Origin: Antechinus flavipes
Taxonomy: Eukaryota
Assembly: GCF_016432865.1 (NCBI RefSeq)
Contig: NC_067401.1
Span: 296,980,001-297,044,000 of the forward strand
Direction: 5' to 3'
DNA: 64,000 nucleotides
Made by a program: the position numbers and the translations under genes. A model generated the notes under the pieces. The model was not told where the DNA came from. It searched no databases and saw only the letters and a program-made list of their open reading frames with translations. Positions 15,489 through 62,419 of the stretch are shown piece by piece. Every line of letters starts with the position of its first letter. Within the stretch, counting starts at the first letter, position 1.

Positions 15489-15490
<2 letters not shown>

Positions 15491-15534: not shown

Positions 15535-15535
<1 letters not shown>

Positions 15536-34254: not shown

Positions 34255-34566
34255 TTAATTGGGCCCATCTTCATAATCACTGTGAGTGAGATGAACATAG
34301 TTCATGTTCTCAGGCTTGCCAAGAAGAAGGCAGTAAGCCGCTTGTTTATCTTGGCAGATTTCTTTGTGTATGATTCCTTCTCTTCTTTCCTAAGGTCAAA
34401 GTATCTTATTTCTACTGAGTTAAGAGGACTTTTTGAATTTGGTTGATCTTTGGTGCATTCTTTAGCTATAATACCTTGTAATTTAGGCCCTTCTTGTCCT
34501 TGATTTCCGTGAAAGCTATTGAAGGCCCATCAGCTGAATTGACATAAATAACATCATTATCTTAAC
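34255..34566 (-). pseudogene. ROS1: ROS1 pseudo-exon 43 (terminal coding exon)
   Basis: TTTCAAAAG| then G*DNDVIYVNSADGPSIAFTEIKDKKGLNYKVL(+2)AKEC...LRKEEKE(-4)KEICQDKQAAYCLLLGKPENMNYVHLTHSDYEDGPN*, versus human GEDGDVICLNSDD...GLNYMVLATEC...LRKEEKE...GKPEGLNYACLTHSGYGDGSD*. Native TAA at 34255-34257. Confidence 0.93.
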
Positions 34567-34639
34567 CTTTTGAAATTAAAAAAAAAAAATCTACTATTAA
34601 TTTAACATAGGAGAGAGAGGAAGCATTACTCATTGGCTA

Positions 34640-35028
34640 CAAGATGCAAAGGCCAAGTTAGTACTTGAAACAGTTGTATATTACTAAATGTGTAGTACCT
34701 ATATGGTATGGTTTAAAGAACACTAAGAATGATCACAAGAATGATCTTAGAAAAACACGGAAAGATTTATATGATATAATGAAGAGCAAAATGAGAAAAA
34801 CCAAGAGAATGCTGTATACAATAACAGAAATATATTTTTTAAGAATGACATTGAGCAATTAAGTCATTTTGACCATTATAAATATCCAAATTAACTATAA
34901 AGGACATATGAAGAAGGACTCTATCTGCATCCAGAGGAAGAAAAAACCTGATAAAAAGGAGTTTGAATAGAATAATCATTTATATAATACATATATATGC
35001 ATATTATATATATATATACACACACACA

Positions 35029-35074
<46 letters not shown>

Positions 35075-35395
35075 TAATGGTAGCCATCTTTAGTATAGGG
35101 GAGAGAAGGAAAAAAGAAAAAATGAAATTTACATGATAACTTTATTATATATTTAAAATAAAAAGCAAGTTTTATATAACAGACTTGCAGTTTCATGAGC
35201 AATCATATTTTTGTCATATTATGTTATAGTCACAACTTTGAGTGGCTATATGATAACTTCATTATATATTTAAAAAGAATAGCAAGTTGTACAAAACAGA
35301 TTTGTAATTTCATGCTTAATAATTTTTTATTCTACTGTGTTATGGAAGTGCTTGTTTTATTTCATAAATTAAAAATAATAAAATTTAAAAATAAA
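34640..35395 (+). mobile_element. L1 3' end fragment with embedded microsatellite
   Basis: Marsupial L1 ORF2-end/3'UTR motifs (AGAAAAACACGGAAAGATTTATATG...AAATGAGAAAAACCAAGAGAA), ending AATAAAG. Internal ~70-nt direct repeat at about 35126 and 35247. Confidence 0.75.
35006..35073. repeat. Compound (TA)n(CA)nCG(TG)n microsatellite
   Basis: Uninterrupted alternating purine-pyrimidine run, palindromic around CG at 35031-35032. Confidence 0.97.
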
Positions 35396-35787
35396 GTGTA
35401 CTGAGAAGCCCCCTGCCACCCTGCCACAGTCTTAAACTCCTAGCAAAAGCAAAGAAACATTGCTTTGGATTAAGCCATTGTTCTCCCTAGGAGTTAATTT
35501 TTATAAATGCAAATATGCCCTGGAAGTAGCAACATATATAAAATCATGTTATTCAATTAATTAAAGAGAACTAATCAATCCAATCCTTTCAAAAGACTTA
35601 GTAGGAATAGGACACAAACCAGATAAATTCTGAAGGAACAGGACTGAAGGATTGGATAGGATGCTGTACTGAGGATTTCAGCTAAGTAATTATTGACATT
35701 GTTGCCTACCTAACATTTTTTTTTTCTGGGATTAATTTTAGCTCAGATTCACTGTATAAACTGTAAGACTTAGCACAGTGCTGTGTT

Positions 35788-36038
35788 TGCTGTTGGTGTT
35801 CAGTCATTTCAGTCATGTTCAATTCTCTGTGACTGTATTTGGGATTTTGCAAAGATCCTGAAGTAGTTTGCCATTTCCTTCTCCATCTCATTTAACAGAT
35901 TAGGAAACTGAGGCAAACAGGATCAGGTGATTTATCCAGGGTAACATAGCTAGTAGGTATTTAAGATCTGATCTGAGCTCAGAAAGAATTTTCCTGACTC
36001 CAAGCGTGGCATTCTATCCATTGAACCACCTAGCTTGC
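35788..36038 (-). mobile_element. Mar1 SINE
   Basis: GTTCAGTCATTTCAGTCATG...TTTGCCATTTCCTTCTCC...CCACCTAGC. Confidence 0.88.
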
Positions 36039-36444
36039 TCATAATGCTGTATATCCAGCAGGAAAAATTAGTTGAATTGATATGGATCAGGGATGGCTAA
36101 CTATATTTTTATATTGACATTGATATCTGTTAGAACAAGTGATAGCGTTTTTATTGGACACATACTTCTGGAATTTCAGTGAATCAGAAAAACTATTTGT
36201 TGAATGAATGAGAGGAGATAATAGGGATGATTAACTTGGATCAATGAGTTTCTACACTGTCCTAATTAGACAAAAAAACAAACAAAACAACCATTTAAAA
36301 AAATGATTCTCGCAAAGGTGATAGTCGTTAAAAATCTGTTAATCCTTCTAATAGTGCCATAGATACCTATTTGTTTGTTCCAGAACAAACCACCTAACTA
36401 TTCTGCCTTCATTTTCCTCATCTCTCCAATGAAACAACAAAAGG

Positions 36445-36651
36445 AACTCAAATAGAAACAGGGGCCACTAAATTATACGTAAGGATCTCTAAGGGTCATA
36501 TATTGACTCAAAAAACTACATATTCACTATGTTTTAATCTATTTTTGTTTATTTCATTAAATATTACCCTATTACATTTTAATCTGGTTCAAGCCCTCTC
36601 TGGAGTATAGTGGGCTCCATGTACCCCATGGGCAATTGTTTGACACCACTG
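36445..36651 (-). mobile_element. hAT-type MITE, copy 2
   Basis: Reverse complement of copy 1 (GGGGCCACTAAA...AAGGATCTCT...ATTGACT), ending TTTGACACCACTG. Confidence 0.7.
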
Positions 36652-37009
36652 GATTTAAATGATTTTTAAGGACTCTGAAATGTTATGCTAGATATTACCT
36701 TTTCTTTCTAACTAACTTTCCAGCATTTAGAACCTCCAAAGGATATTTTCTGTTTATTATTCTGGTCTACATTCTGAGTGTAATGTATACTTATTTCCCT
36801 TTTACAATGAAATAAAATGAAACAATTTTGGAACATGAAAATATCATAGAGGAACAAAGAAAGTGATATCTTACCTTAGCAATTTCAATTTTGTTAAGTC
36901 TCCAGGTATGAATAATAAATTCACTGGAATACCAAATACTTATTAGCAGCATTCCACCATATCTTTATTCTTAGTAATAGGTTTCTTTCCTCCCCTCTAA
37001 GATTTAGGA

Positions 37010-37110
37010 TAGTCAGTCAATAAAGATTTAAGTATCTACAATGTGCCAGACACTGCATTAAGCTCTAAGAATATAAAAAGAGGCAAAAGACAGTCCCTGA
37101 ACTCAAGAAG
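37010..37110 (-). mobile_element. L2 3'-end fragment (similar fragments near 4060, 7500, 16290, 59430, 60020)
   Basis: TCAGTCAGTCAATAAAGATTTAAGTATCTACAATGTGCCAGACACTG...AAGACAGTCCCTG. Confidence 0.6.
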
Positions 37111-37111
37111 G

Positions 37112-37267
37112 NNNNNNNNNNNNNNNNNNNNNNNNNNNNNNNNNNNNNNNNNNNNNNNNNNNNNNNNNNNNNNNNNNNNNNNNNNNNNNNNNNNNNNNNN
37201 NNNNNNNNNNNNNNNNNNNNNNNNNNNNNNNNNNNNNNNNNNNNNNNNNNNNNNNNNNNNNNNNNNN
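37112..37267. other. Assembly gap (156 N)
   Basis: N run. Confidence 1.
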
Positions 37268-37845
37268 AAGAACAACAATACAATGATTCCAGGGTCACTA
37301 ATTTTCAAAACTCTACTTTCCAGACAAACCAGACCAGACCACTTGTCTGTGTCTTTCCCAATATCAGTCTGTCTTTCTCCTGCCTCCATGCCTCTTTTTT
37401 AATTTGACTTCCATGTCTAGGATGTCTTCTCTCACATCTCTACCTTTTGGTATCCTTTCCTCCCTGCAAATTTCAATTCAATTAATACCTCCTCAAAGAA
37501 TGCCATTCAGTTTAGATTTCTCATAGCCTTATATTCCAATATGACTTATACTAGTTGTAAATTCACTCAAAATTGCAATGGACTTCTGAGGTTGCTGCTC
37601 CAACCTATTCCTTCACAACAATTTCTGTTATATCATGACCACAAAGTGTTTTTTTTTTAGCCTTCCAGTAACAGGAAACCCAATTTTTATTGGGATAGCC
37701 TAGCTCCTTGGAGCAAGGACTTATTTCCAGTGCTTAGTATTATATACACTACATAGAAGAAGTGTCTGACAATTTTTTAAAATTAATTTCACTTCTATCC
37801 ATTTTATTTCCCCAACCATTATGTTTAAATTTAAATATTACAGAA

Positions 37846-38035
37846 CAGAGGTGTCAGGCACACTTCCTAAAGGCTGTATGGCCAATAACACTCCCAAATG
37901 CTGCCTGAACCAGATGAAAATTTAATTAGGAAATAATGAACAAAACAAACAAACAAAACCATAATAGAAGACAGATACTGCAAATATGTTGTTTTATAAG
38001 ACTATATGTTTTAGTGGCCCCTTTTTGATTTAATT
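37846..38035 (+). mobile_element. hAT-type MITE, copy 3
   Basis: CAGAGGTGTCA...AACACTCCCAAATGCTGCCTGAACCAGATGAAAATTTAATTAGGAAA...TTTAGTGGCCCC. Confidence 0.65.
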
Positions 38036-38244
38036 TTAAAAACCAATGATCAAGAATATTCCTAACTATTCTCTAGCCCACTGGAAAAAGTTTAATCAGC
38101 TGCCAAGTCTAATTGGTGCTACCTCAGTTTCTATCCCTAAGTAATATTAGCTTAATACAATCTATCATCTATTTTTGTTCTATAAGAAATGATCAATAAT
38201 GTTGTAAAAAATTACCCTGGCATGGGTTCTGTCAATAAAAAGTT

Positions 38245-38770
38245 ATTTTAAAAAAATGATCAACAGCATGATTTCAGAGAGGGCCAGAGAGACTTACATG
38301 AACTGATGCAAAGTGAAGTAAACAGAACCAGGAGATCATTGTACACAGCATAAACAAGATTATATGATGATCAATTTTGATGGACATGGCTCTTCTCAAC
38401 AATGAAATGACTTATGCCAGTTCCAGTGATCTTGTGATGAAGAGAGCCATCTACACCCGAGAGAGGACAGTGGGAACTGAGTGTGGATCACAATGTAGCA
38501 TTTTCACTTCTTTTGTTGTTGTTTGCTTGAATTTTATTTTCTTTCTCATTTTTTCTTTTTTGATCTGATTTTTCTTATGCAGCAAGATAATTATATAAAC
38601 AGATATGCCTATATTAAATTTACATATATTTTTGCCATGTTTAACATATGTTGGATTACTTGCCATCTAGGGGAAAGGGGGGAATTGGAACACAAGGTTT
38701 TGCAAAGGTCAGTGTTGAAAAATTATCCTTGCATATGTTTTGAAAATAAAAAAGCTTCGATTAAAAAATA
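38245..38770 (+). mobile_element. L1 3' end (marsupial), 5'-truncated
   Basis: GAGAGACTTACATGAACTGATGC...AGAACCAGGAGATCATTGTACAC...GAAAATAAAAAAGC A-rich end. Confidence 0.9.
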
Positions 38771-38926
38771 CATTCTCTCCTCATACTTAAATGACTCAAA
38801 ATGTGTTTCGTGGGGAGATGCCACCAGCACCACTGCAGAAGAGCCATGGAAATCACCTCTTGGATTCAATGTGCCAAAGAAATCACCTCTGTCCCTGACC
38901 CCTTTACCCCACCACTCTCAGGAGCC

Positions 38927-39473
38927 ATGGGTAGCTTGAGACAATGCTTCCAGAGGTTCTTGAAGCAGAAAAACATTATCACAGATGTCTTCAGGAAGCT
39001 GAGGAGATCACCAGTATCAAAAAGTACTACTTGGCTACAAATTCTATCTTCTTCATGGCTCTCTATCTCATATTTGGCTATGGTGCCTCCTTGCTTTGCA
39101 GTCTCATTGGATTCATCTACCCAGCATATGACTCCATCAAAGCCATTGAAAGCCTCAACAAAGATGATTTAACTCATCTAGTGGCTGGAATATAGCACAT
39201 GTAGTCTGGCTGACTTTTTCTCTGACATCTTACTTTCTGGTTCCCCTTCTTCTCTGCAGGAAAATGTGCCTTCTTGCTATGGTACATACTTCCAGTGGTC
39301 TGAAATGGCTCGCAGATCTTGTATTATTACTTGATCCACCCCATTTCCTGATGCATCAAGCTTCCATGGACAGTCTGGTGACTTACCTAAGTGGCCAAAC
39401 CTTGGACATGGCAACCAGTTTGAACCAGAAAGCAACCAAGGCAGGCATGACTCACCTACAGAAGAATAAGTGA
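38927..39473 (+). pseudogene. REEP6: Processed (intronless) REEP6-like pseudogene
   Basis: GCCATG then [22 protein letters not shown](-1)..[72 protein letters not shown]. No introns, several frameshifts, TGA at 39301. N- and C-termini fit REEP6 better than REEP5. Putative 3'UTR runs to A-tracts at about 39819-39850. Confidence 0.85.
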
Positions 39474-40304
39474 AGAGATCACTCTTGAGCCAGAGGCTTC
39501 TAATGTTCAGTCATTAGACTGAAAAGCCTCCTCCTAACCCCCTTAGGTTCAGGAACTATGACTCCCCAATTCTGGCTCATATTCATGCAGCTGTCTCTTT
39601 CCTCATGGGCTTTAGGGCACTCCCAAGATTGGGAGATGGGGTGAATATGGTAGGGACTTCTGCCTATCTAAATTCTAACAGCACCCCTTAAGAGTCTGTT
39701 GTTGTTCAGACTGTTCTAAGTATACCATTGACCTCTGTCTCTGGCCCCTTCCACACACCACTAGTCTCACCCCAGGACTCTTGGAGTGTCCTGACTATTC
39801 CAGTTGCCCATGTATTAGGAAAAAAAAAGAAGTCTACACAGAAAAAAAAATACTGTATGCTATACAAGAAAGAATGCTACACTGGGGAGTTAAAGGACCT
39901 GGGTTTAATTCCTGGATCTACTTCTTACTATTTTGGCAGATATTTAACTTCTTTAGGTCTTCATTTCTTGTAAAACTAAGAGGTTGGTATAGTTAAGCAA
40001 CAAGATATTCTCTAATGATCTGGTATAATTAAAACAATTTAAATAAAGGTTCAAGGATGATTTAGTATTGTAACATAAATAGTAGAATACATAAGAAATC
40101 ATCAGAAGAAAAAAGATAAGTAAGTTACCAGGGTTTCAGTGTCAGAAAGCAAAAATACTTCTTTACAATAAAGGATTGGACATAGAGAAAAAAAGGAATT
40201 TCAAAGAAAAACTTGCAATGCAACATGTTTTTGTAAATCAGCTATTTGTTGATATATTAGTCAATGTGAAAAAAATTAATAAAACTAGTGAAATTCCTTA
40301 CAAA

Positions 40305-40535
40305 CAAAGGTTTTTAACCTGGAATACATTGGCCTCCAAGGAATTTATGGATAGATCATAGGGAGTATATGAATTTGCATAGGAAAATGTGCATCTTTAT
40401 TTTTACAAGTCTTACATTTCCTTTGTAAGTTGTATATTTTATTTTATGCACTTGAAAACTTTGTTCTGAGAAGGGGTCCACAGGTTTTATTAGATTGCCA
40501 AATAGGTGCATGACACAAACCAAGGTTAAGAAAAG
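40305..40535 (+). mobile_element. Charlie4-like short element
   Basis: GGTTTTTAACCTGG...TGTTCTGAGAAGGGGTCCACAGG...CATGACACAAACCAAGGTTAAGAA. Confidence 0.7.
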
Positions 40536-41467
40536 AAGGAGATTAAAATGTTCTAAGAATGGACATGGAAGGAAAACCATTAGCTAACCACTTCATGGAT
40601 TCAGAATGCTTGCACCAACTTGGTAATTCAACCCCAGCAAAGCTTTCAGCAATCAGTGTGGCTCCTTATTGCATAAAGATTTGGGGAAGCATTTTCTTCT
40701 GCCTCTTCTCCCTCCTCTCCTCTCTTTTCTTTTTTCTTTCCCTTAAAGTCACTTCATAGAAAGCCTACAGGTCAAACTGCCTTAAAACAGATATTCCAAG
40801 CAAAGGCTGAATGTACTTCAGGAGTCCACGCCTAAGAGGGAAATATCAAAATAAAGACTTCCAAGTAACCCTGGATATTTACAGACGAGACATATGCCAG
40901 CTGACTAGCTATGTTTAGAATGGCCGAGGAGCATTTAGATTTGTTTCCTGTAGAAGTATCTGGGACTGATGAGGTGATGTTTACACAAATGTGAGGATGA
41001 AGTCACTAGGATATTTTTACTTGATATACAGATATGTTATTAATCCTTTCTCCTCATCCCCTTTCTACTCCATTAGGTCAGTAGGACCACAGAATATATG
41101 TAGCACTGACTCTTTATAATCTAAATATTCATGTGTCAGAATTTTAAAAAACTAAAGTCTTTCCATTAGACATTTTCTTTTTATACTGCTCACCACATTT
41201 CAAAAGTAATAAGCAATTCAACAGATTCTGTTTTGTTAAATGCCTTTGTTGGCTGGAGTCTGACCTTTAAATGGATTGCCTTGCTATTTCTAGTCACAGA
41301 ATTCTTCTTTTGTGTCATTCATTTTGTTTGTTCTTTCTAGGCATGAGGTTCTGCTTAATCCTATTCCCTCACCTAGAAGTGATCCTTTTCCTCTTAAGAA
41401 TTCTCATAGAATCTGTAACTCTCATGCCCTTTTCACACACTAACTTTCACTGTGACAGCTAGAAGGC

Positions 41468-41940
41468 TTAGTGGATAGAGCTCTGGATCTGGAGTCAGGA
41501 AGAACTGAGTTCAAACTCAGACACTTATCAGTTCTGTGATCTTGGGCAAGTCACTTAATCTATATTTGCCCTAATGGAGCAGGAAATGAACTAAGCCCTC
41601 CAGTGTCTTTGCCAAGAAAGATCAACCATAAATGATATGGTTGATGATAAAGAGAGGGTGAACAACTTCTCAACCTTCCTAGTCATCTATATTCATCAGC
41701 TGCATTTTGAGGCAACTAGGTGATACAGTAGCTAGAGCCTTAGCTCCAAGAAGATTCATTTCACGAGTTCAAATCCGGGCTCAGACACTTACTAGATGTG
41801 TGACCCTGGGCAAAGCACTCATCCATGTTTACCTCAGTTTCTTCATTTGTAAAATAAGTTGGGAGAAACTTTGCCAAAAAAAAAAAAAACCCTCAAATGA
41901 GGTTCTAAGAGTTAGAGACACCAGAACAACAATAATAATA
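41468..41940 (+). mobile_element. Two adjacent Mar1/core-SINE copies (about 41468-41625 and 41710-41940)
   Basis: Each has GAGTTCAAA...CAGACACTTA...GTGA.C.TGGGCAA...TTTGCCAA. Confidence 0.75.
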
Positions 41941-42434
41941 ACAGAGAGACTTGAGTTGTTGTTTTTTTGAAATTAACGGGCAAAATACAGCACCCAAACA
42001 ATTAGAATAACAAAGACAGAACTGTGGATTGGAGGATTGGAGGACAATGATCTTGTTTACTTAGTTTAATTTGCGTTCTGGCTTAAATTCATATGCATGT
42101 CAAACCAGAGAGGATTTGTAGGGTATCCCAAAGTATATAATACTAAGTATTATCCTCAAAACTAAAACTTTAAAAGATGGGAAAAGACAATTTTTGCTCT
42201 CAAAGAACTTATAATTTGGTTCAGGAGAGAGAAATACACTACAGTAGTTCCTCTCAAAAAAGAAGTCCTCAGAATTATTATATGGTTCTCTGTGGATTTG
42301 ACTCCACTCAAAATCTATAACAATAATCCTTACTGATGTATTTTCCTCCCATTAGTCAGTCAGATCAAAACATATGCATAGAAGCACCCTTCTTTAATAT
42401 CAAAAAGATATATTTTAAAACTATGAACTAGTAT

Positions 42435-45170
42435 TGTTTTCAGTGGAGAAATACTAAAAACTTTCCAAAAACAAACTTGGATAAAATAAGAATATCTATT
42501 CTCCCCATTATGATTAGCATCTGGAAATGCTATTTAACCTCTCGAGGTCTTAATTTTTTGATCTATAAAATTAGAAGATTGGTATAATTGAGCAATATGA
42601 TCTTTTTTCATCCTAAATCTATGATACAGTACAATTAAAGTAATTTAAATAAAAGCTCAAGTGATTTATCACAAGAAAACAAAGTGATGTAAAGAATTAA
42701 CAAAAATATAAAATCCTCTCATTCAAAATGACCAAAACGTATATGTTTAAATATCAAATAATCAATGAAGAAAATGAATTGAGAAATAGCTTCATTAAAT
42801 TAGCAGGATGCAAAATAAATACACAAATAAAATTTGCCTTTCTATATGCTATTTAAAAAAGCAGAAATAGATATATTTCATTCAAAATAGTTAAAAACAT
42901 AAATATGAAAAATATGGATTTATATGAATATAACTGCAAAATAATTTTTCACTAATAAAAGGATGCAAGTAATTATAGAATTAGTCAGTCCTCATAATTG
43001 GACTATTAAAAATAACAATACTATCTAAATTAATTTACAGATTTTGCACTCTAGCAATCAAGTTGCAGAGATAATATTTTGTAGAATGTGAAAAAAAATC
43101 ATTATCTTAAGGAAGATATAAGAGGAAAGACTGAATAGAGAAAAATGTAGTATTACCAGATCCCTATTGTAAAGCAATTGTCATTGAAACTCTTTAACAC
43201 TGTTAAAAATGACAACAACAGGAAAGTAGATCAGTAACAGCAAATTTTGAAGCAGAAAAAAGAAAGAGAAGACATTTTGAGAAGCCTAAGAAACTAAATT
43301 CCTGACAATAGGGCTTTGTTTTTGATAAATACATAAGGAAAATCTGAAAAACAAATTAGCAGAAATTAGGATTAGATGAGTACCTTATGCCACAAACCCA
43401 AAATACTCTAAATGGATATATAATCTAAATATGAAGGATTACAGTATTTTTAAAAAGATAGAGAATATGTTTAGATATCTTTCACAGCAATGGTAGGGGG
43501 AGAATTCTTACTGAAATAAACTATTTTCACCAACTGTAATCAAAATCTGATATCCAAAATATATAGGAGTTGATATATGATTATATTACGCTAAGGGCCA
43601 CTCCCCAATAAATTTAAAGATATGTTTGTATTTCAAAAACATTACAATTATAAATTAATACATGAAAGCATACACCAAATTTCTAATAGTATGAAAAATA
43701 CAAATTAAACAATTCTAAGGATTTACCTCACATCCTGAAATTTGACAAAGGTAACGAAAAATAAACCAGTAACAATCAAAGTTGGAGGTGCTGTGGGAGA
43801 ACCAGGACATGAGCATATTTTGGTAAAGTTGTAAAATTAATAAATAATCTACATTTGTCTAAGGATATCAATAGTCAGATTCTGACAGAAGAAATCTAGA
43901 TGATTTTATAACTATATGAAAAAAAGATGCTCTAAACCATTGATAATTGGAGAAATGCAAATAAGATTCCATTCCATACACAACAAGTTGGCAAAGAATA
44001 CATAAAGAGAAATAATAAATATTGGAGAAGCTGTGTGGAAAAAGTATATATTCTCCAATTGATAAAATCAAAATATAAGAACATGTAGCTTTCAGAAGAA
44101 GAAATCAAATCTATCTGTAGTCCTATGAAAAAATGTTCTAAAATCAATACTGATTGATTGTTTTTCAGTTATTTTAGTTGTGTTCAACTCTTTATGACCC
44201 CTATTTGGGATTTTCTTGGAAAAAATAGTTTGACATTTTTTTCTCCAGTTCATTTTACCTATAAGGAAATTGTGGCAAAGCTAAGTGACTTGTCCAGTGT
44301 CATACATCTAGTAAGTGTCTGAGGCCACATTTGAACTCAGGAAGGGAATCGTCTTGACTTCAGGCTCAGCACTCTATCTCCTGTACTATCTAGATGCACA
44401 AATCACTGTTGATTAGAGAAAGGGAAATTAAAACAACCCTGAAGAACTATCTCATATCTATCAGATTAGTTAATATGACAAAAAAAGAATATGACAAATG
44501 TTGGAGGGTATGTGGGGAAATAGGGAAACAAATGCATTGTTGGAGTATAGTTGCAAACTAGATCAACCATTCTGGAGAATCATTTGGAACTATTCCCAAA
44601 GAGTTATCAAATTTCTGAAAACTACTCACCCTTTGACCTAGCAACACCAATACAAAGTCTATATCCCAAGGAGATCAAAGAAAAAAAATATTTATAGTAG
44701 CCCTTTTTAGTGGTAAAAAATGGAAATTGAGGTGATATCCATCAATTGAGGAATGGCTGAAAAAGTTGTGATATATGATGGAATACTATTGTGTAATACG
44801 AAATGATGAGAAAGATTTCAGGAAAAACTGGCAGACTGTAGTAAGCAGTTCTAGGAGAACATTATATACAGTAATAGTAAATTTGTATGATGATCAACTG
44901 TAAGTGATGAAGGCAATAATCCAAGACAATTCTGAAGGACTTATGATTAAAAATGCTACCCATCTTTAAAGAGAGTGAATATTGAAATATATTGAAATAT
45001 GTTTTTCAGTTGATTTTTCTTGCTATATTTGCAACATAGTTAATGTATGAAAATGTTTTACATAATTTCATATGCATGGGTGAGATCAAATTTCTTGCCT
45101 TCTTAATGAGTATAAGTGAAGAGAATTCAGAATAGAATTTTTAAAATAACTGTTAAAAAGTAAATCATAA
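42435..45170 (+). mobile_element. Old degraded L1 ORF2/3'UTR with nested fragments, interrupted by MIR and Mar1
   Basis: RT-like NGE.LK.F..GI..ECPLSP remnant at about 42440-42530. CCHC-region remnants at about 43655, 43910 and 44090/44400. CCATCAATTGAGGAATGGCTG end motif at about 44740. Confidence 0.8.
44156..44399 (-). mobile_element. Mar1 SINE inserted into L1, with 15-bp TSD
   Basis: Flanked by AAATCAATACTGATT (44141-44155) and AAATCACTGTTGATT (44400-44414), 12/15 identical. Confidence 0.88.
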
Positions 45171-47929: not shown

Positions 47930-47979
<50 letters not shown>

Positions 47980-48000
47980 TATATATATATTTAACATATA
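47180..48000 (+). mobile_element. Younger L1 3' end (ORF2 CCHC region plus 3'UTR)
   Basis: Reads ...GKLGTLVHCWWSCERKQPF.RAIWN..., GGATGCCCATCAATTGGAGAATGGCTGAGTAAATTG, and ends in a (TA)n array. Confidence 0.92.
47933..47990. repeat. (TA)n microsatellite in L1 tail
   Basis: About 29 TA units with one interruption. Confidence 0.97.
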
Positions 48001-48064: not shown

Positions 48065-48545
48065 ACAAATTTTAGAGCATCAGAACATCCAAAAAGATGA
48101 AGTGGAGCATTTTCCAACTGAAGGCAACTTAAAAGCTCAGCAGACCAGGGGGAGAGTCCAGTATTGCAATCGTGGTGCAGGACATGCCAATGCAGCTCCA
48201 GATGTAGTCCTAGCCCCAGTCCTGGGCTCAGCCTGATCTCTGAATCAGTGGCTGTACTGGTGGCTTCCAAATTTCTCAGCCCAGAGACCCCAAAGAGGAC
48301 CTAGAAGTTCAGCAGAAAAGATCTATGACACCATGGTGGGAGTCATGCAATCCCAGTGCAGGCCATGACAATGCAGCCCAGATCCAGTCTCAGCCCCAGT
48401 CTTGGCCCCAGACCCATTCACAGGCCCAGCCCATCCTCTGAATCACTGGCAGTACTGATGGCTTCAAAAACTCTCAGCCCAGAGATACCAAAGAGAACCT
48501 GGAACATCAGCATAAAAGATAAGAAACCAGGGTGGAAACCCAGTG
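48065..48545 (+). mobile_element. L1 5'UTR-like fragment with two ~198-bp tandem units
   Basis: CTCTGAATCAGTGGCTGTACTGGTGGCTTCC... at 48238 recurs as CTCTGAATCACTGGCAGTACTGATGGCTTC... at 48436. Resembles recalled marsupial L1 5'UTR monomers. Confidence 0.6.
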
Positions 48546-48559
48546 CTCAATTCCAAGAT

Positions 48560-49205
48560 TCACCTTTGCAAAACCCCATGTTCCAAATTTTTCTCCCTGT
48601 TTCCCTCCCTTGTTCCTCCCCAAAACAGCAAGCAATCTGATAAAGATTAAACATATGCAATTCTTCTAAACATATTTCTAGAATCATCATACTAATGCAA
48701 GAAAAATCAGATCAAAAGGGAAAAAAGTGAGAAAGGAAAAAAACCCACAAACAAACTAAATTAATTAACAACAAAAAAGGATAAAAATACTATGCTTTGA
48801 TCCACATTTAGTTTCTACAATTCTCTTTCTGAATGTGGATGACATTTTCCATCACAAGCCTATTGGAATTGCCTTGAATCGCCTCATTGATGAAAAGAAC
48901 CACATACATGACAATTAGTCATCACATAATCTTGTTATTAGTGTACAATGTTCTCTTGGTTCTGCTCACTTCATTCAGCATCAGTTTATGTAAATCTTTG
49001 TAAATCGTTTTCTGAATTCAGCCTACTCCTCATTTCTTATAAAATAACAATATTGGCCTTAACTTATTCAGCCATTCCCCAACTGATAGGCATTCACTCA
49101 ATTTGCAGTTCCTTGCCACTATAAAAAGGGTTGCCACATTTTTGCATGTGTGGCTCCTTTTCCCTCTTTTACAATCTTCTTGTGATATCGACCCAGTAGA
49201 GGCAA
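48560..49205 (-). mobile_element. L1 3' end, minus strand
   Basis: Reverse complement of the same motifs as 38245-38770 (GTGTACAATGTTCTCTTGGTTCTGCTCACTTCATTCAGCATCAGT; TTATTCAGCCATTCCCCAACTGAT). Confidence 0.9.
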
Positions 49206-51749: not shown

Positions 51750-51975
51750 GGATGGCTCAGTAAATAGAGTACTTAAGTTGGAATCAGGAAGACCTGGGTT
51801 CAATGCACACTCAGACATTTACTAGTTATGTGATCCTGGGTAAGTCACTTGACCCTGTTTGTCTCAGTTTCCTCATCTGTAAAATTAAATGGAGAAATGA
51901 CAAACCAATCCAGTATCTTTGCCAAGGAAACCCCAAATTTTCAAGAATTGGACATGACTGAAAAAACTAAACAAC
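51750..51975 (+). mobile_element. Mar1 SINE
   Basis: TCAGGAAGACCTGGGTTCAA...CTCAGTTTCCTCATCTGTAAAAT...CAGTATCTTTGCCAAG. Confidence 0.9.
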
Positions 51976-52381
51976 CATTATTTATAATGCACAATTAAAC
52001 ACAAGCTTTGTTCAACAACATTTATTCAAAATATGCCAAATGGATACTGAAGACCTTCTGTTTCTAGAACATTGGACTAGAGGACACTCAAGGAGATAAG
52101 AAATCTAGAAAAAACATGGTCCTTATCCTCATAGAGTTAATGGTATTGATATATTAGAAAATTATGTTATGTCAATTCCTTGAAACCATTGTTAGAAACA
52201 TACTCCGTTGTATTAAGTATTGAGGTGATCAACTGAGTAAACAAAAAGTCACCATCAGTGTGACCTCTATTAGTGTACTAGTTCCAATTTCTACTTAAAA
52301 ATCAAACTCTAGGGAAAATATTATGAGTGAATATTTACTTTTTTGATTGGTATTGCTGGCACTAATGGATTTTTAACTTAC

Positions 52382-52512
52382 AAATCATCAGGGCAATTTC
52401 TCAGTGGCTCTACTCTTCTTCTTGATTAGATATAAAACATCAGAATTGGAATGATCTGGATAAGGTTCATGATCAAGAGTTAAAAATCTCCTAAATCATA
52501 ATTCTAAAAACT
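52382..52512 (-). pseudogene. ROS1: ROS1 pseudo-exon 41
   Basis: TTTTCATTTTTAG| then VFRIMI*EI(+1)TLDHEPYPDHSNSDVL..(-5)..EPLRNCPDD|GTAAGT, versus human SFGILIWEILTLGHQPYPAHSNLDVLNYVQTGGRLEPPRNCPDDL. TAG at 52491-52493. 131 = 135+1-5. Confidence 0.93.
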
Positions 52513-53324: not shown

Positions 53325-53570
53325 TATATGTTTCTGACAAGACCTCTGATGATGAGAAAAACAGCTCAAGCCACTTAGAGGAGCTAGAATTTATTAGGAC
53401 ATTTTTCTTACATCCTCCCAAAATCTGCTAACCTGCAACTCTCAATTATTGCTTCTGGATTTGTCCTCTGAGACACAGAAAAATTAGACTTCCCTCTCTT
53501 CCACATTACAACCCTTCAAATTTCTAAAAACATCTATTGTGTCTCTCAGAGAGACTTTGGGCTAAACACC
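53325..53570 (-). mobile_element. CR1/L3 3' fragment
   Basis: CTTCCCTCTCTTCCACATTACAACCCTTCAAAT and TTCTGGATTTGTCCTCTG resemble the L3 ORF2 end on the minus strand. Confidence 0.6.
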
Positions 53571-53719
53571 TCATTCCTATTTGAATGGATCTTGTAAGTG
53601 GTTCAATGGTCAGAAAACCAACATGAATGGATTTGTGAGCTTTTGAAGTTAACATATATTTGCTTTTCCCTTAACACCACGGATAATGGTAAATTTATCA
53701 CACTTAACAGAAGGCCTTC

Positions 53720-53882
53720 AATTTTTCAGTCATGTCTAACTCTTCATGACCCTACTTTGAGTTTTCTTGGCAGAGATATTGTTGAGGTTGTTTGCCATTT
53801 CCTTCTCCAAATCATTTTACAGAGAATAAGTGTCTGAGGCTGGATTTGAATTCAGGAAGAGAAGTCTTCCTGACTCTAAGTC
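53720..53882 (-). mobile_element. Mar1 SINE, internally deleted
   Basis: TTTTCTTGGCAGAGATA...TTTGCCATTTCCTTCTCC...TAAGTGTCTGAGGCTGGATTTGAA. Confidence 0.8.
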
Positions 53883-54921
53883 CTTTACTTAGTCTATCAT
53901 TTTTTAGATATATGACTTTAATGGCTACTAAATCAATGACAACATACCTCTAAAATATCATACTCTAATTTAAGCTGACCATATTCTTCCAACTACGGAT
54001 GTAAAACAAATTTAAATTAAAGATACATATTTTATTACTTTAGTAATGAAGGAGTGATGTTGACACAGTAACAGGAGACAGTGTGGTATGATACAAAGAG
54101 TACTCAATGGACATCAGGAGACTTGAATTTGAGTTCCATCTTTGTCACTAAATATCTGTGTGATCCAGGATAGGTCTCGTTGCTCAGGGCAAAATCATGA
54201 TTGGGTGCTTTCATGGGATGATAGGATCATAGATTAGAGTTAGAAGGGACTTAGAGGTCATCTACAAGTCATGTAGTTCAATTTCATTACTCAACAGAAA
54301 AACTGAATAATTTACACAATGTCATATAAATCATATAAGTAGTAAGTAGTTCCAGATACAGGATCTAAAACTAGGTCCTTAGGCTTCAGAGCCTAATATA
54401 TATTGCCTAAGGCACCAAATGTAGAAGGCACTCAAATGGGGGGAAGGGGGAGAGGGGGTAATTATATTTGTAGTCTTTTATGGAAACAGTTCATTTATTT
54501 AAATTTTTATTTAAAATAGAAATTATTTAACTTATTGTTCATTTATTCAATCATATTCAATTATCTAATTTAGTTATTTAAATTAAACAATTAATTAATT
54601 GTTTGAGTAGAATGGAGGAGCTTCTTTTCACTTGTAACCTATTTCTCTCCCTAGTCTACCAGTTAGTGGAGAGTTCTGTGAGTTTTTCACATGTCCCAGG
54701 CTATGTAACAAGAACATGCATTATGTCCTGTTTTCCATAAGCATAAAGATTCCTAGTTCCAGGTTGGATTACAGAACCTATTTTCCTACAAGCAAAATGA
54801 AAGTATTGGGTTTTAGAAATTTTTTCAAAAGTCTTTTCCATTGCTAACTTTCTACAACTTTTTTTTGGCTATGTTAATATGTTGTAGTTCACATCCCACT
54901 GAAGTTCTACCATATATTTAC

Positions 54922-55115
54922 CACATGTCCAATTGAGTAGCAAATATCCCATCAATCAAAGTTTTTGGAGCCATCCAATGAATTGAAGTAGCCATTCTTC
55001 TCTCTTTCTGTAGTAAGCATTTTTATAGATGTCTCCAAAGTCCCCAATTTTCTCTATCTCAGATACAATGGTATACTATTTCATTTAGACAAGGCAGTTC
55101 CAAGTAGTTGGTTCT
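54922..55115 (-). pseudogene. ROS1: ROS1 pseudo-exon 40 (catalytic loop, DFG, activation loop)
   Basis: CCACATCAG| then EPTTWNCLV*MK*YTIVSEIEKIGDFG(-9)DIYKNAYYRKREEWLL(-1)IHWMAPKTLIDGIFATQLDMW|GTAAAT, versus human [67 protein letters not shown]. 194 = 201+3-9-1. Confidence 0.95.
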
Positions 55116-55264
55116 CTGATGTGGAAAGGAAAATTATGAATATAAACTATGATGAGAGCAGAGAACTAGTGCATCAGTCAGAGGCCACAGATCTCACTTT
55201 CAAAAATATTCCACCCAAAACAACAAAGCCAAGTATCTCCCCTACACCTCCATAGGAGATAGAT

Positions 55265-55749
55265 CAACAATTCTTAAACTTTTTCGTCTCATGACCCCTT
55301 TACATTAAAAATTCCTGAGGCCCTAAAGAACTTTTGGTTATGTGTGTCCTATGTATCAATTTTTATCATTTTAGAACATAAAAGTGAAATTTTAAATCTT
55401 TATTTGTTCATTCATTTTAAAATAGCAACAATTAACCTACTACCTATTAACATAAATAGTTAATAAAAACATTTTTTAAAATATGTGAGAAAAGTGGCAG
55501 TTTTAGATATCATTGCAAATTTCTTTAATGGATAGCATAATAGAAGACAGTAGGATTCTCACATATTCTTCTGCATTCAATCTGTGGCAATATGATGTTT
55601 TGATAGAAGTAATGAAGAAAAATATTGCCTCACATAGATATTGGAAAGGGACAATTTTAAAAGACAAATAGTATTTTGACTTCTCAGGCTGTTTTAGAAA
55701 GAGTTTAAGGTATCCTTGGTTGGACAAAGACCACACTTTGAAAAGTGTC
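55265..55749 (+). mobile_element. hAT-Charlie (Charlie1-like) deleted DNA transposon in ROS1 pseudo-intron 39
   Basis: Starts CAATTCTTAAACTTTTTCGTCTCATGACCCCTTTACA, contains TTCTGCATTCAATCTGT, and ends GACCACACTTTGAAAAGTG. Confidence 0.75.
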
Positions 55750-55910
55750 AAATAAATTACTATAAAAATGTTTTGAGGAAAAATCATACATATTCTAACA
55801 CAAATTTAAGTAATAAATTAATCTTGCCTAACTCATCCAAACTAAGGAGCCAACATTCCTAAATAATACACATAGATTTATGGCCAAATGATGTCTAGGA
55901 AACATTGTAC

Positions 55911-55996
55911 ACATGAATGAGGTGTAGTTGTTCAAAATAGACATAGCCGGAAGAGATGTTCAAAAGGGCATCCAAAGTGAGAGCAGAACTTCAGAA
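55911..55996 (-). pseudogene. ROS1: ROS1 pseudo-exon 39
   Basis: TTTCTCTTCATTTCCTGTAG| then F*SSALTLDALLNISSGYVYFEQLHLIH|GTACAA, versus human FYGPLLTLVDLVDLCVDISKGCVYLERMHFIHR. TGA at codon 2 and a 12-nt deletion (86 = 98-12). Confidence 0.85.
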
Positions 55997-58292
55997 CTAC
56001 AGGAAATGAAGAGAAACAATAACTGCTAAGATCACACACACACATATATTTCTATAAAGGACTTGTAGTTAAGCCTATTAGGGATATAATCAGTTTACCA
56101 AATGTACACAAATTGTGCCAACTTATAATAATGATAATGATCATAGCTAGACTTTATATGGCAGTTTAAGACTCTTGCAACACTTCACATATGTTAACTT
56201 ATTTGATCCTTATAACAATTCTGTGAAATAGATGCTTTTATATTATCCTCATTTTGCAAATGAGGAAACTGAGGCACAGAGAGGTTAAATGATTTGCCTA
56301 CTTCACATAACTAGTAAGCATCTAAGATTTGAACTCATTTCTAAATAATGAGTCAAGCTTATAGTCTTGCTCTAAGTCTATAATCTTATTATTCGAATTG
56401 GATTTTTTTGTGAATAAGTTAAAAATTCCAGCTATATTTTTGTTCTTTGTACTTCTCTGTACTTCTATCAAATTTCTATACTTTGGTACATGATTGTATT
56501 GTTAGTAATAATCCATAAAATAAATGATAGTATGTGCAGTTTCTTATCTTGTATTTTTAATCTAAAAATAAGTGATATTAAGCAGATCCTACTTTACCCA
56601 AGCTCTATGACATCTAATGACAGACATTAGTCTGCCATTGTACTTGGGCTTCTTCTCTTGAAAGGATTTACAGTACAAGAAGAATACCTACAGTGCCTAT
56701 ATTTTGGGTATACACTTCCTTCCTAGGTAGGTATTTTTCCTCCCCATGATGACTACCAGTCCTATGTCTTGTCTCATTTTTTTTTTTTACTGGCCCATGC
56801 CATTACAAGTGTGACCATCATCCTCAGGGTCCTGTCACTGTAACACTCCTCTCTTAGACCCACCTATCTTTCAACTCCCAAGGGGGGGCAATAGATAAAT
56901 CACCTCTTATAGGTACCTATGATCAAACTGCCATCTGAACCAAATATCAATTCCCCAAACTGCAATTCCAACTGTTTTTGAACCAAGTAAATAATTTCTA
57001 GTTATGGTTCTATTTCTCTTACTTTATCTCATTTATTTACACTTCTGAAATGCAAAATAAATAAGTGCAGGTACCATCACCTATATTTTACAAATGAGCA
57101 AAATATCCCATGAAGGAATTAAGTGCCTTCTCTGAAGGACACGTGGCAAACTTGAACAGATCTCTTAGAGTTAGAGAAACCAGTACTTTGAATGTCAGGG
57201 CACTCTGCTTCTCTTAAAAAAAATAAATAGCAGGCTCATATTACTTCAAAATGTCAGAAATGTGAGGTCAGTTTTCTAATGGCCCTCATCCAGTGAGTAT
57301 CTGAAAGTAAGGTAAGAATATATCACAAAATAATCTGGAGAAGACAGCATAGCACAGTGGAAAGAACACAATATCTATCATTTTGGGGTTACAGAAAATG
57401 CATTTAACCTTTCTGGGATTCAAATTCATCATTTACAACGTAAGGTAGTTGATCTATAGAAGTCCCTCCCAATCAATGTTCCTAGATAATTAATATATGA
57501 GTTCAAAAAGCAATTGACTTTCAGAACTTTGCCCAACATGGGATTTTTTTTAGGACAGCAAATAAAGTCAATGAGTAAACTATCTCCAGTTTAAGACTAA
57601 CATTGTGAACCATATCTTCTACTATTATTATATATGCTTTTCATAAATACATCTTTCCATCTATTCTAAGATAATATATTGGGGATCAGTCAACCAACTC
57701 TGGGCTGAGGAGATGCAGGAATAAGTCATTCTTATAAAAATAAACAAACAACAAATATGAAACCCTCAGCTTCTAGAAGCTATTTAAAATACTTAATTTT
57801 CTCTGAGGAGTATTTCAGCATCCTCAACCCCCAATTATTTCCCTTTATTTGAAATATACTGTTCTTGTTCTGAATCGTTAAGGAGGTATATGGTACCCTC
57901 TAGTGGTTACTGGCTGTGTATAAGAATAAGCTGATCCTAAGAACTAAAACTTTGCCCAGTGATTTCAACCTTGTGAAGAGAAAAATATATTATTCAAGTT
58001 TCCCCAAGACCTTTCATACCAAGACCTTGAAAACCAAGGCTCTTTGGTTCTTAAAAATATGAAGTATATTCTATTTTTGTCATCATTTTATAGAAAGGCT
58101 AAGAGACTTTTACCAAAATACGAATGCAAGAAAAATAGTGATAATATTTATTCATTCACATTTCTAAATAGTATCAGAACTTGTAATTCTTAATTCCTCT
58201 TAGCCATTACTTTATAATTTATCTGACTGCTGAAACAGCTTGTTGCCCATAGGCAGTTTTCATTGCTTAAAATTCATTTCTCTGTGTTTGTG

Positions 58293-58405
58293 TGTCAAAA
58301 ATATTAGTTTATAGGAATTTTGCAACAAAGCTAAAACTAACATAAGGCAAATAAGGCCTTGCCCTCAGGCACTGATATCTAGAGGGAGAAATGAAAATTT
58401 GTCCT
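58293..58405 (+). repeat. 113-bp direct repeat, copy A
   Basis: Ungapped, 96/113 identical to 60639-60751 (manual count). Confidence 0.9.
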
Positions 58406-59035
58406 AGGAGAGGTAAACATTCTTTTTTTTTCAAGACCTTCTCACAGTCCTATTTATCACATATACCATACTAGGACCAACATCCCTAGAATTTTTTCAA
58501 TCTGGTGCCCATCTCTGGGCATGCCAGTAGAGATAAAGATCAGACTTCTCACTCTTATTGTGAAACTATACTTATAGTCAGAATGTTTTCTGAGCCACAA
58601 CCATTCTTTTCAGATCACTATCACTTTCTCTCTCAGTTTCAATTATTGCAAAAATTCCTAGTTACAACTCTGCTTTGCAGATGACCACCACTCTTAAATT
58701 TTTACCAGCACCATTTATGATTACTAATACACTCAACAATCCTTTCCTATTGTTCTCATTTCCATCAGTTTAAGGAAACACAAGATTATGCTAACAGTAC
58801 AACAGCTTCCAAAATTCAACAATACGCAAATTCTCCTTCAAACTAATGAAAAGATAAGAAAAGGAAAGAAAAAGTTGATAGCATTTCAATTCTTTTAGAT
58901 TTACAGATTTGAGTGTACCTGTTTATTACTGATGTGTTCTATTGCCTCAGTTCATTTAAGATATGAAAAATGATCCAATACACAGATAACAAGCTTCCTG
59001 AATGTGTCAAAGGAAAGTAGTTTCAGAACTGTTAC

Positions 59036-59100
59036 CTCATCAGGTGTGCCTCCTTCAGGAAGTCAATCTTCTCTTCCGCTGTTGAGCCTTTCTTTAGAGT
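59036..59100 (-). pseudogene. ROS1: ROS1 pseudo-exon 37 (alpha-C helix)
   Basis: 65 nt, TLKKGSTAEEKIDFLKEAHLM-AG|GTAACA, versus human TLKKGSTDQEKIEFLKEAHLMS. Acceptor reads CAC| instead of CAG|. Confidence 0.93.
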
Positions 59101-60363
59101 GTGCTCAGTATAAGATCAAATGACTGGTTAGTGTAACTTGATCACTATGAGTAACTTACTCTGATGGAAGTATAATGGATTAATGTCAATCCTTCTTTGT
59201 AATACCCATGCTTAAAGCAAAAGGAAAGTTTGCTTAGGAAAGCATATTGAGAAGAATTTTCAAATGAAGTGTCTGGTATTTTGTGCTAAGTGTACCAAAA
59301 GAAACTAATTGTAAAGATGACAAGTTTGATTGTTAGCTGATCATTTCTTGATTTTAAAAACTCTCACTATCCTTTTGTAAGACACAAGTCCTTGATGAAG
59401 AACTACCCTGAAGTTAATTAAATATGAATCAGCAAATATTATGAAGTGCCTACTGTGTTCAAGAAACTGAGCCAGACACTACCCAGTTTTCTCCAAAATG
59501 AAAAGCTTTTGGTTGATGTGGGATAAAGGGAAAGATAGAATGTTATGAGAAAAGCAAGACTTTCTTATTTTAAATTTCAGTTCTCTAAAATAATCACTTA
59601 CATAACAGGATAACTACTGCAACAGAGTGGAATAATGTATCAAGTATTAAACCTTACATCAGGAAAGCCTAGGTTCAAATATTGCTTCTGTATGTCATCT
59701 TGCATAAGTTATTTCATCTCAGTTTCCTTCCCTGCCCAGGGTCTAAATAACAACCTAGTTTTCCTGCTATGTTGCCCCAGGTATTGAAGTTCCCTTTTTA
59801 ATCAATTTTGTAAAACTGAGATTCCTTCTGGATCTGAATCTGTGATCCACTTACTGGTTATATGACCATGGACAAATCATTTCAACTTTCTAAATGTCAT
59901 GTAACTCTTTAATACTATGTTACAAATGTATCTCAAATCTGTTCAGTAGAAGATATTCTCATGTTGGCACAATCATACATCCTTGACACAGAAATATTCT
60001 AAACTAAATTAAATGTGAATCAACAAACATTTAAATGCTACTGTATTTGAAGTACTGTGCTAGCACTAGAGATAAGACAAAAACAAAGCAGTTGGTTATT
60101 GTTACCAAGAAATTTATGATACATTTTTAAACAGGTAAGTGAAATAGAAGCCAATTTGAGGAGGAAGAGAGAGTCCTGATAACATGATTGAAGGGCTTTG
60201 TAGGAGAGGTGGTATCTTAGATGATCTTTGATAATAAAGTGGTATTACATTACATTAGTTCAGGCACTCAGCAAAATTACAAAATAGACAAAATCTGGAT
60301 TCAACAGTTGATTGATATAAGCTTTGGTTTCTTCTTCTCCCAGTCTCACTTCTAACTGGAATT

Positions 60364-60618
60364 ATTTTGTTATTATTGAGTCATTTCAATCGTTTCTAAC
60401 TCTTTGTGACCTCATTTAGCGTTTTCTTGGCAAAGATATAGGAATCTCTGTTGGTATTTCCTTCTCCAGCTTACTTTCACAGATGAGGTATTGGAATACA
60501 AGATGGTAAGTGACTTGCCTAATATCACACTCTTATCTGAGACTGGATTTGAACCCAGAAAGATGAGATTCCTTGACTCCAGGCCTAGCACTCTATCTAT
60601 TACATTACCTAGCAGCCC
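60364..60618 (-). mobile_element. Mar1 SINE with 12-bp TSD
   Basis: Flanked by CTAACTGGAATT (60352-60363) and CTAATTGGAGTT (60619-60630). Confidence 0.88.
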
Positions 60619-60638
60619 CTAATTGGAGTTGTTGGTAC

Positions 60639-60751
60639 TGTCAAAAATATTAGTTTATAGAAATCTTGCAACAATGCTAAAACTAGCATGAAGTAAATAA
60701 GGCTTTGTCTCTAGGCACTGATATCTAAAGGGATGAATAAGAATTTGTCCT
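60639..60751 (+). repeat. 113-bp direct repeat, copy B
   Basis: Same start (TGTCAAAAATATTAGTTTATAG) and end (AATTTGTCCT) as copy A. Confidence 0.9.
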
Positions 60752-61284
60752 TTCCCTGTTTAATCTATTTTCTAGAACTTTTCTCCATCCTCATTCCTAT
60801 TAAAAACTTACCTGGTTTGTGACTTAGCTTTTGTTGGATGACTCTGGGTGTCAATCAATTGTATAAATTTGCTTGTATACATGTCTGCTGGCTGAAGGTC
60901 ATAGATCATAATATTTAAAACTGGAAAGACCTATAGAAATCAATTCTAACTCCCTCATTTTATAAATATGGAAATCATCCTCAAAGGTTGCACACCCAAA
61001 TTTATATAAGTAGAAGATTCAGGATTTGAATCTAAAAGTTCTGATTCTAAATCCAATGTTCTTACCAGTATACCACTCTACCTCCCAAATAAAAAAAAGT
61101 TGAACCCATAAAAATACATATGTCTCCAGAAAGATCCCACAAAATAAGAATTCTAAAAAACCATGGTTTGCGATGATGAAATACCTCAACAGTTGAACCT
61201 TTAGGTACCCTGTAAAATATGTCATGACTTTTGATCTCTGTATAGGGTTAGCTACATGCTTATGTTTCCATTTCATAAAAACTT

Positions 61285-61800
61285 TTTAAAAAAATTTAAA
61301 TTTATTTATTTATTTAAAGCTTAAAAACAAATTAGAGTAAGAATGAAAACTATTACCATGTGCAACAGCAGAACATAAAAGAATATTCAAAATATAAAGC
61401 AAAAGTTTTCATTTCAAGAGAGCCCAATAATAAATACTACACTTTGTGTTCAAAAACTATCTTTGCTTTCATGTGGGTTTTCTTTTGTTCTCTGCTATGC
61501 ACTTTTTATCTTATTCTTTTTCCCTCTTTTGTTCCCCCTCCCCAATAAGGCTACAATAAATTTTATATTTATATTTACATATATATGGATATGTGTATTG
61601 TGACACAAATATACACATGCATATACTTAGATATCTATAATAATGCATATATATTCTTATACATCTTTGTAAAACCCATACTATACTTATTTATCCTCTG
61701 TTCTTTGAAGGTGGATAATATCTTTCATCAGTCTAAGTTCTTCCATATTTTTCTAAACAAACCAAATCATCGTTTCTGATATGACAGCAATATTCCAATC
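61285..61800 (-). mobile_element. Old L1 3'UTR fragment
   Basis: T-rich tail on the left and marsupial L1 3'UTR-like body (CAGCAGAACATAAAAGAATATTCAAAATATAAAGC; CTTTGAAGGTGGATAAT). Confidence 0.65.
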
Positions 61801-61987
61801 TTATACTCTCAATTTTATTTTAGTCTAAAGCTATATTGAGCAATATGGTTTACACATATGTAGTTTCTTGATTTTTCTCTTTTTATTAAATTTGTAGAAC
61901 TTTTTGATTAATGTGACTTCATATAAGCTTACCAGAAGCTAGTCCATCTCCTTCCCCTGATAATCCTTTTCAATGAACTGTAAGTTT

Positions 61988-62245
61988 ATTGTTGTTCAAT
62001 TATTTTTCAGATACGTCTGATTCTTGGTGACTGAATTTTGAGTTTTCTTGGCAAAGATATTGGAGTGCTTTGCCATTTCCTTTCCAGCTCATTTTACAGA
62101 TGAGAAGCTGAGACAAATAGCATTAAGTGATCTGCCTAGGATCATACAGCTAGTATGTGTCTGAGGCCAGATTTAAACTCAGGTTAATGAGACTTCTTGA
62201 CTTTGGGTTCCACATTCTATCTACCTACTGTGGCTGCCTAACTGC
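61988..62245 (-). mobile_element. Mar1 SINE inserted about 12 bp from the ROS1 exon-36 donor
   Basis: TTTTCTTGGCAAAGATATTGGAG...TCATTTTACAGATGAG...GTGTCTGAGGCCAGATTT...GGCTGCC. Confidence 0.88.
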
Positions 62246-62257
62246 CTAAAGCTTTAC

Positions 62258-62419
62258 CTTCACTGCTATTAATGTCCCTGCTTCCAACACCTCAGATATC
62301 TTTTGCTGTCCCTACATACACCTCTCCAGAGACCCCCACTTCTCAGCAAGAGACACAAAATCAGTTTTTCCCAGGACACAGAAGAAACATATTTAATCTT
62401 ATGTTAGGTCAGAAGAGTA
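62258..62419 (-). pseudogene. ROS1: ROS1 pseudo-exon 36 (kinase subdomains I-II)
   Basis: Minus strand reads TLLT*HKIKYVSSVSWEKLILCLLLRSG(+1)VSGEVYVGTAKDI*GVGSRDI(-2)AVK|GTAAAG, versus human TLPTQEEIENLPAFPREKLTLRLLLGSGAFGEVYEGTAVDILGVGSGEIKVAVK. Acceptor is AT instead of AG. 162 nt = 163+1-2. Confidence 0.92.

Follow-up and report, generated by a model that had tools for sequence, protein, structure and literature searches.

Can a mammal do without the receptor kinase ROS1? The gene has been conserved between flies, where it is called sevenless, and mammals, and a locus of the yellow-footed antechinus (Antechinus flavipes), a small carnivorous marsupial, bears on the question. The locus lies in a 64-kb stretch of chromosome 4 (GCA_016432865.2 / CM028220.1:296,980,001-297,044,000), here called the window, in which remnants of ROS1 exons stand next to the gene VGLL2. 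Compared over 7.2 and 20.8 kb, the window and this 486-Mb chromosome record are 100.000% identical. In mouse, ROS1 is the receptor in the epididymis by which NELL2/NICOL from the testis brings about the initial segment; it is essential for differentiation of the epididymis, and male mice become infertile when ROS1 is knocked out or inhibited by drugs (PMC12476209, PMC10125973).

We find that the 3' third of ROS1 in this species (exons 36-43, which encode the kinase domain and the C-terminal tail) is very probably a long-dead, intron-retaining pseudogene at its ancestral locus. As read from the sequence, the syntenic ROS1 locus carries multiple disabling lesions, as expected of a unitary pseudogene. 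A first-pass annotation of the window had proposed a decayed ROS1 at the syntenic position in A. flavipes, and our analysis bears this out: the whole kinase-coding 3' part is decayed, and it lies at VGLL2. The searchable literature yielded no account of such a loss in marsupials.

Seven ROS1 exon remnants in collinear order

Reading the minus strand in three frames, with coordinates set by exact string look-up, revealed seven ROS1 exon remnants in collinear order, corresponding to exons 36, 37, 38, 39, 40, 41 and 43 (Table 1). Six of these had been listed by the first-pass annotation, all of which are present and in order; exon 38 is a seventh that its list lacked.

Table 1. Positions in the window of the ROS1 exon remnants, the neighbouring gene and the assembly gap between exons 41 and 43.
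Feature	Position	Strand	Support or remark
ROS1 exon 36 remnant (juxtamembrane end, G-loop, VAVK)	62419-62258	-	motif z=10.9
ROS1 exon 37 remnant, 65 nt, reads TLKKGSTAEEKIDFLKEAHLM	59100-59036	-	PDB E=1.4e-5, ROS chains only
ROS1 exon 38 remnant, ..LTDPQYIILE*ME..	57730 to ~57640, 3' boundary uncertain	-	motif z=6.4
ROS1 exon 39 remnant, F*SSALTLDALLNISSGYVYFEQLHLIH	55996 to ~55913	-	motif z=8.3; PDB E=0.73
ROS1 exon 40 remnant (catalytic loop, DFG, activation loop)	55115-54922	-	two PDB-matching pieces
ROS1 exon 41 remnant	52512 to ~52381	-	PDB E=3e-3, ROS chains only
ROS1 last exon (43) remnant, natural stop TAA 34257-34255	34566-34255	-	C-terminal motif z=12.4
VGLL2, intact	12582-19370; exons 12582-12698, 15694-16011, 18795-19370	+	Pfam Vg_Tdu E=3.6e-21
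Assembly gap (N)	37112-37267	.	within the exon 41-43 interval; SINE-like sequence on both flanks

Single stop-free pieces of the remnants were compared with all PDB sequences. The piece from exon 37 matched residues 49-70 of the human ROS1 kinase chain 9qek_A, and that from exon 41 matched residues 223-246; in both cases ROS chains were the sole matches. Exon 40 gave two matching pieces, one aligning to residues 165-196 (E=6.3e-5; best ROS chain 5.2e-5, insulin receptor 0.078) and the other to residues 192-214 (E=1.1e-4). The exon 39 piece aligned to residues 126-146, with three matches in all, each of them a ROS chain. ROS chains always ranked on top for the matching pieces, and INSR, IGF1R and ALK scored 10 to 1000 times worse. 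Along the DNA, the matched segments 49-70, 126-146, 165-196, 192-214 and 223-246 fall at 59.1, 55.95, 55.05, 54.95 and 52.45 kb, followed by the C-terminal tail at 34.3 kb. Where they can be aligned, the remnants and the human kinase share about 63% identity.

Exons 36, 38, 39 and 43 were also recovered by a motif test, in which short human ROS1 motifs were scored on 31 kb of the minus strand and compared with 100 shuffles. Each motif had its global best match at the expected collinear site, with z values of 6-12 above the shuffles. More general searches were less productive. PDB searches with the 44-residue exon 36 frame piece alone and with the exon 38 piece alone returned no match, in the latter case because the conserved stretch is too short; exon 43 likewise has no significant PDB match. 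Pfam returned a single weak match to PK_Tyr_Ser-Thr (E=0.035) for ten stop-free pieces, and a 39-residue exon 40 piece, which scores about 26 bits, gave no match at E<=0.001 among 1.84 billion protein representatives. A homologous-protein search with a 75-residue piece of exon 43 yielded no candidates.

We read the remnants as the ROS1 orthologue: they are closer to ROS1 than to other kinases, collinear and separated by introns. They share with human and mouse ROS1 the order of the kinase exons, a C-terminal tail that ends at the same stop, and ROS chains as best or only PDB matches. Unlike its human and mouse counterparts, the Antechinus copy has no open reading frame; its G-loop, HRD loop and post-DFG residues are destroyed and splice acceptors are lost.

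Disabling lesions across the kinase exons

Within about 1.04 kb, the remnants carry eight in-frame stops, at least seven frameshifts and at least five in-frame insertions or deletions (indels), and two acceptors are lost. Stops interrupt six of the seven remnants. The reading starts to fail in exon 36, which has stops at 62406-62404 (TAA) and 62294-62292 (TGA), has gained one nucleotide in a G-run (62337-62333) and has lost two near 62270, before IAVK. Its donor GT is retained (62257-62256), and the dinucleotide before the exon is AT (62421-62420), not AG, at a 5' boundary that we presume to match the human exon boundary. Exon 37 has neither stop nor indel and agrees with human ROS1 in 18 of 21 residues. 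Its donor GT is likewise retained, and its acceptor AG, at a well-defined boundary, has become AC (59102-59101).

Exon 38 contains a TAG stop (57663-57661); its 5' half is unrecognisable and about 9 nucleotides (nt) short, and its 3' half is shortened by deletions. Exon 39 combines a TGA stop (55993-55991) with a 9-nt in-frame deletion and keeps its acceptor AG. In exon 40, where both acceptor and donor are retained, the catalytic motif RDLAARN has turned into REPTTWN, with stops at 55087-55085 (TAA) and 55078-55076 (TAG). The same exon has a +3 insertion, a 9-nt deletion (55033/55032) that takes LAR after DFG, and a -1 frameshift within 54991-54971. Exon 41 has lost a TGG codon to a TAG stop (52493-52491) and shows one nucleotide added in a T-run (52485-52481), two deleted near 52425 and the loss of 2-3 nt at its 3' end beside GTAAGT. 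A further apparent stop after NCPDDL in this exon was rejected as an in-frame stop, being the GTAAGT donor. Exon 43 is legible only by shifting among three frames; it has a TAA stop at 34564-34562, has gained two nucleotides (TA) near 34468, lost four near 34368 and gained three near 34335, and it retains the natural stop.

The first-pass annotation had claimed stops in five of its six exons, frameshifts in four of those five, and two destroyed acceptors. These counts are exact: exon 36 has two stops, exon 39 one, exon 40 two, exon 41 one and exon 43 one; exons 36, 40, 41 and 43 are frameshifted as well, and exon 37 has neither kind of lesion. The AT before exon 36 and the AC before exon 37 are likewise as it read them.

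Features of an active kinase fail throughout: the G-loop is frameshifted, the catalytic loop replaced, the DFG followed by a 9-nt deletion, and no open reading frame remains. Judged from these lesions, no ROS1 kinase can come from the exon 36-43 locus, because stops or frameshifts affect all kinase exons other than exon 37 with its 21 codons, because nothing functional is left of the catalytic loop or of the first part of the activation loop, and because two acceptors are gone and exon 42 is missing or unrecognisable. In sliding BLOSUM scans of the 17.8-kb interval between exons 41 and 43, no candidate for exon 42 scored higher than shuffled sequence. A match reading FLNSI*KG at 42836 was discarded, since the sequence there is AT-rich and would give such a match by chance. 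Exon 42 may be deleted, decayed past recognition or hidden in the assembly gap, which lies 2.5 kb from exon 43 and 15 kb from exon 41. No lesion relies on continuity across the gap, since it adjoins no remnant.

A product without the kinase is a different matter. ROS1 could still be made from exons 1-35 as an ectodomain with transmembrane and juxtamembrane segments, acting as a NELL2-binding decoy or co-receptor, and the first disabling stop that we see, five codons into exon 36, would suit such a truncation. The deep 3' decay suggests that the whole gene has long been free of constraint, and truncated-only receptors with 35 conserved exons would be unusual; we regard a surviving kinase-less ROS1 as very improbable. 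Exon 35 is absent from 62420-64000, the remainder of the window upstream of exon 36.

Position beside VGLL2

The ROS1 remnants and VGLL2 stand tail-to-tail, 15 kb apart, with the ROS1 stop codon at 34255 on the minus strand. The human genes, at 6q22, are neighbours in the same orientation, and we take this to be the ancestral arrangement. Between the remnants lie introns of 0.8-3.2 kb, and their retention led us to reject a processed retrocopy. The first-pass annotation had reached the same view, that this is the original locus and not a retrocopy, and the retained introns together with the tail-to-tail position at an intact VGLL2 uphold it.

In these respects the locus resembles unitary pseudogenes that single mammalian lineages carry in place of a gene conserved elsewhere, such as GULO in primates or the lineage-specific losses listed by comparative screens, which are likewise decayed at the syntenic locus with introns retained and multiple independent lesions. 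It differs from the GULO type in that ROS1 is a gene needed for male fertility in mouse.

Could ROS1 have been duplicated or moved, leaving a dead copy here and a functional gene elsewhere in the antechinus genome? Relocation of a 43-exon gene of more than 100 kb is rare, and the copy seen here holds the ancestral position beside VGLL2 with its introns kept. From the 64 kb of the window and the VGLL2-anchored loci, we give a second, functional copy very little probability and continue to regard this locus as that of the original gene.

VGLL2 also serves as a control for sequence quality. The A. flavipes assembly was built from PacBio continuous long reads (CLR) at 100x coverage, with canu correction and wtdbg2, and was polished by Pilon with 50x short reads (PMC9290055). 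The origin in CLR data, the two frameshifts that lie in G5 and T5 runs and the gap within the locus would all be in keeping with an intact ROS1 garbled by sequencing or assembly errors. Errors of this kind do not readily produce what is found. All eight stops are substitutions, several of them needing two changes; catalytic motifs are replaced, 9-nt deletions are present, and only two frameshifts fall in homopolymers. Identity to the human kinase is down to about 63%, whereas VGLL2, 15 kb away in the same short-read-polished assembly, is flawless. Along its full length it matches its counterparts in eleven marsupials at 94-100% identity, without a stop or a frameshift, and its coding sequence of about 1 kb shows zero lesions, against more than 20 in neighbouring ROS1. 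Assembly error therefore does not account for the ROS1 damage, as the first-pass annotation had argued from the lesions themselves, and the chance that ROS1 is truly intact here appears close to nil.

Age and phylogenetic scope of the loss

The remnants can be set against the divergence of the same locus in other dasyurids. A non-coding alignment between Antechinus and Sarcophilus gave 0.0485 substitutions per site and 8.0 indel events per kb (4.0 per lineage), and one between Antechinus and Sminthopsis gave 0.069 substitutions per site and 11.2 indel events per kb. The ROS1 remnants hold about 12.5 indels per kb, roughly three times the per-lineage amount of the Antechinus-Sarcophilus comparison and 2.2 times that for Sminthopsis. 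Likewise, eight substitution stops in about 350 codons correspond to some 0.12-0.18 neutral substitutions per site, and the Antechinus-Sarcophilus split to about 0.024-0.03 per lineage.

These values bear on the possibility that the loss is recent, confined to Antechinus or Phascogalinae and tied to semelparity, with its regression of the testis ahead of mating and its reliance on sperm kept in the epididymis. The unusual male reproductive biology of the species (PMC9290055) would make such a link attractive, as would the nearly pristine exon 37. Both the threefold excess of indels over the lineage's share since the Antechinus-Sarcophilus split and the far larger substitution estimate from the stop count speak against it, and we consider a recent, semelparity-linked loss very unlikely. 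The high indel density instead argues that neutral decay has gone on for tens of millions of years, since before crown dasyurids and antechinus semelparity.

Published calibrations place the divergence of Sarcophilus and Phascogalinae at no more than about 22 million years ago (Ma), that of Dasyuromorphia and Diprotodontia at 56-64 Ma and that of Dasyuridae and Didelphidae at about 72 Ma (PMC9290055). By this yardstick the inactivation of ROS1 would date to about 40-70 Ma or earlier, with a wide margin of error. We infer that this was well before Phascogalinae and semelparity, near the ordinal splits of Australasian marsupials. Such a date is compatible with a loss that American marsupials share and with one that they do not.

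An inactivation that is tens of millions of years old and predates the radiation of dasyurids predicts that the loss is shared by other dasyurids and perhaps by more marsupials. The depth of decay, in the one species examined, argues that the loss is old and predates crown Dasyuridae, which fits a broad loss without proving one, and the relatives of antechinus probably lack a working ROS1 kinase too. An inactivation as early as the stem of Australasian marsupials, or of all marsupials, in line with the candidate marsupial loss raised by the first-pass annotation, is plausible, though we hold it somewhat less likely than not. For Sarcophilus, Sminthopsis and Dromiciops, the sequence anchored on VGLL2 ends 2.5-6 kb before the last ROS1 exon. 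In the cuckoo, a 10-kb flank of VGLL2 held no ROS1 exon.

Several points weigh against reading the locus as a long-dead unitary pseudogene. The evidence comes from the assembled sequence of one individual of one species. The window covers the region of exons 36-43, with exons 1-35 beyond it, and the view is limited to these 64 kb and the VGLL2-anchored loci, so that a second ROS1 copy could exist elsewhere. Exon numbering and the human alignments of exons 36, 38 and 43 draw in part on short motifs of human ROS1. The dating is rough, since it treats about 13 indels and eight stops as Poisson counts, and some in-frame indels may precede inactivation or belong to the human lineage. Finally, exon 37 is near-pristine among strongly decayed neighbours, which is somewhat unexpected after very long neutral decay; its preservation may be chance within 65 nt or may reflect residual constraint, for example from an embedded regulatory element.

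Implications for epididymal signalling

A mammal that has lived without a ROS1 kinase for tens of millions of years would mean that the NELL2-ROS1 axis is not universal, and that a gene required for male mouse fertility is dispensable in a mammal. Should the loss be shared across marsupials, epididymal differentiation in this group would be independent of ROS1 kinase signalling. A whole infraclass would then mature its sperm without the NELL2-ROS1 receptor, using a different receptor or control logic. This raises the question of what replaced ROS1 in marsupials, and whether NELL2, NICOL, OVCH2 and ADAM28 are relaxed or lost as well. The finding is also relevant to the use of marsupials as models for ROS1-driven cancer or male contraception. 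It concerns genome annotators too, since a pipeline that works by homology may impose a gene model on the dead ROS1 locus.

Other features of the window

A. flavipes has a karyotype of 2n=14 (PMC9290055). Downstream of the three VGLL2 exons in Table 1, an alternative 3' coding exon of the gene lies at 20545-20817 on the plus strand and is used in longer annotated isoforms of Antechinus, Sarcophilus and Dromiciops. Upstream of VGLL2 there is a second assembly gap of 237 N (window 9773-10009), which is present in the public record too. Rfam returned no RNA family within the window.

Copies of a short interspersed nuclear element (SINE) of about 190 bp, 71-75% alike, occur at 33039-33229, 35787-35987, 44159-44344, 51793-51975 and 61990-62183. 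Copies are also found downstream of VGLL2; one immediately follows the donor of exon 36, and sequence of this type borders the gap between exons 41 and 43.

The same interval contains intronless fragments resembling REEP5 (TB2-DP1-HVA22-like) at 38800-39500 on the plus strand, split over frames. ESM Atlas features pointed to TB2_DP1_HVA22 in 80 of 100 matches, with a top score of 0.92, and Pfam was negative; the fragments are probably a processed pseudogene. At 48100-48650, also on the plus strand, a locally GC-richer patch of a ROS1 intron holds two adjacent, alike open reading frame segments (..SESVAVLVASKFLSPETPKRT.. and ..SESLAVLMASKTLSPEIPKRT..), probably a duplicated repeat or a fragment of a long terminal repeat.

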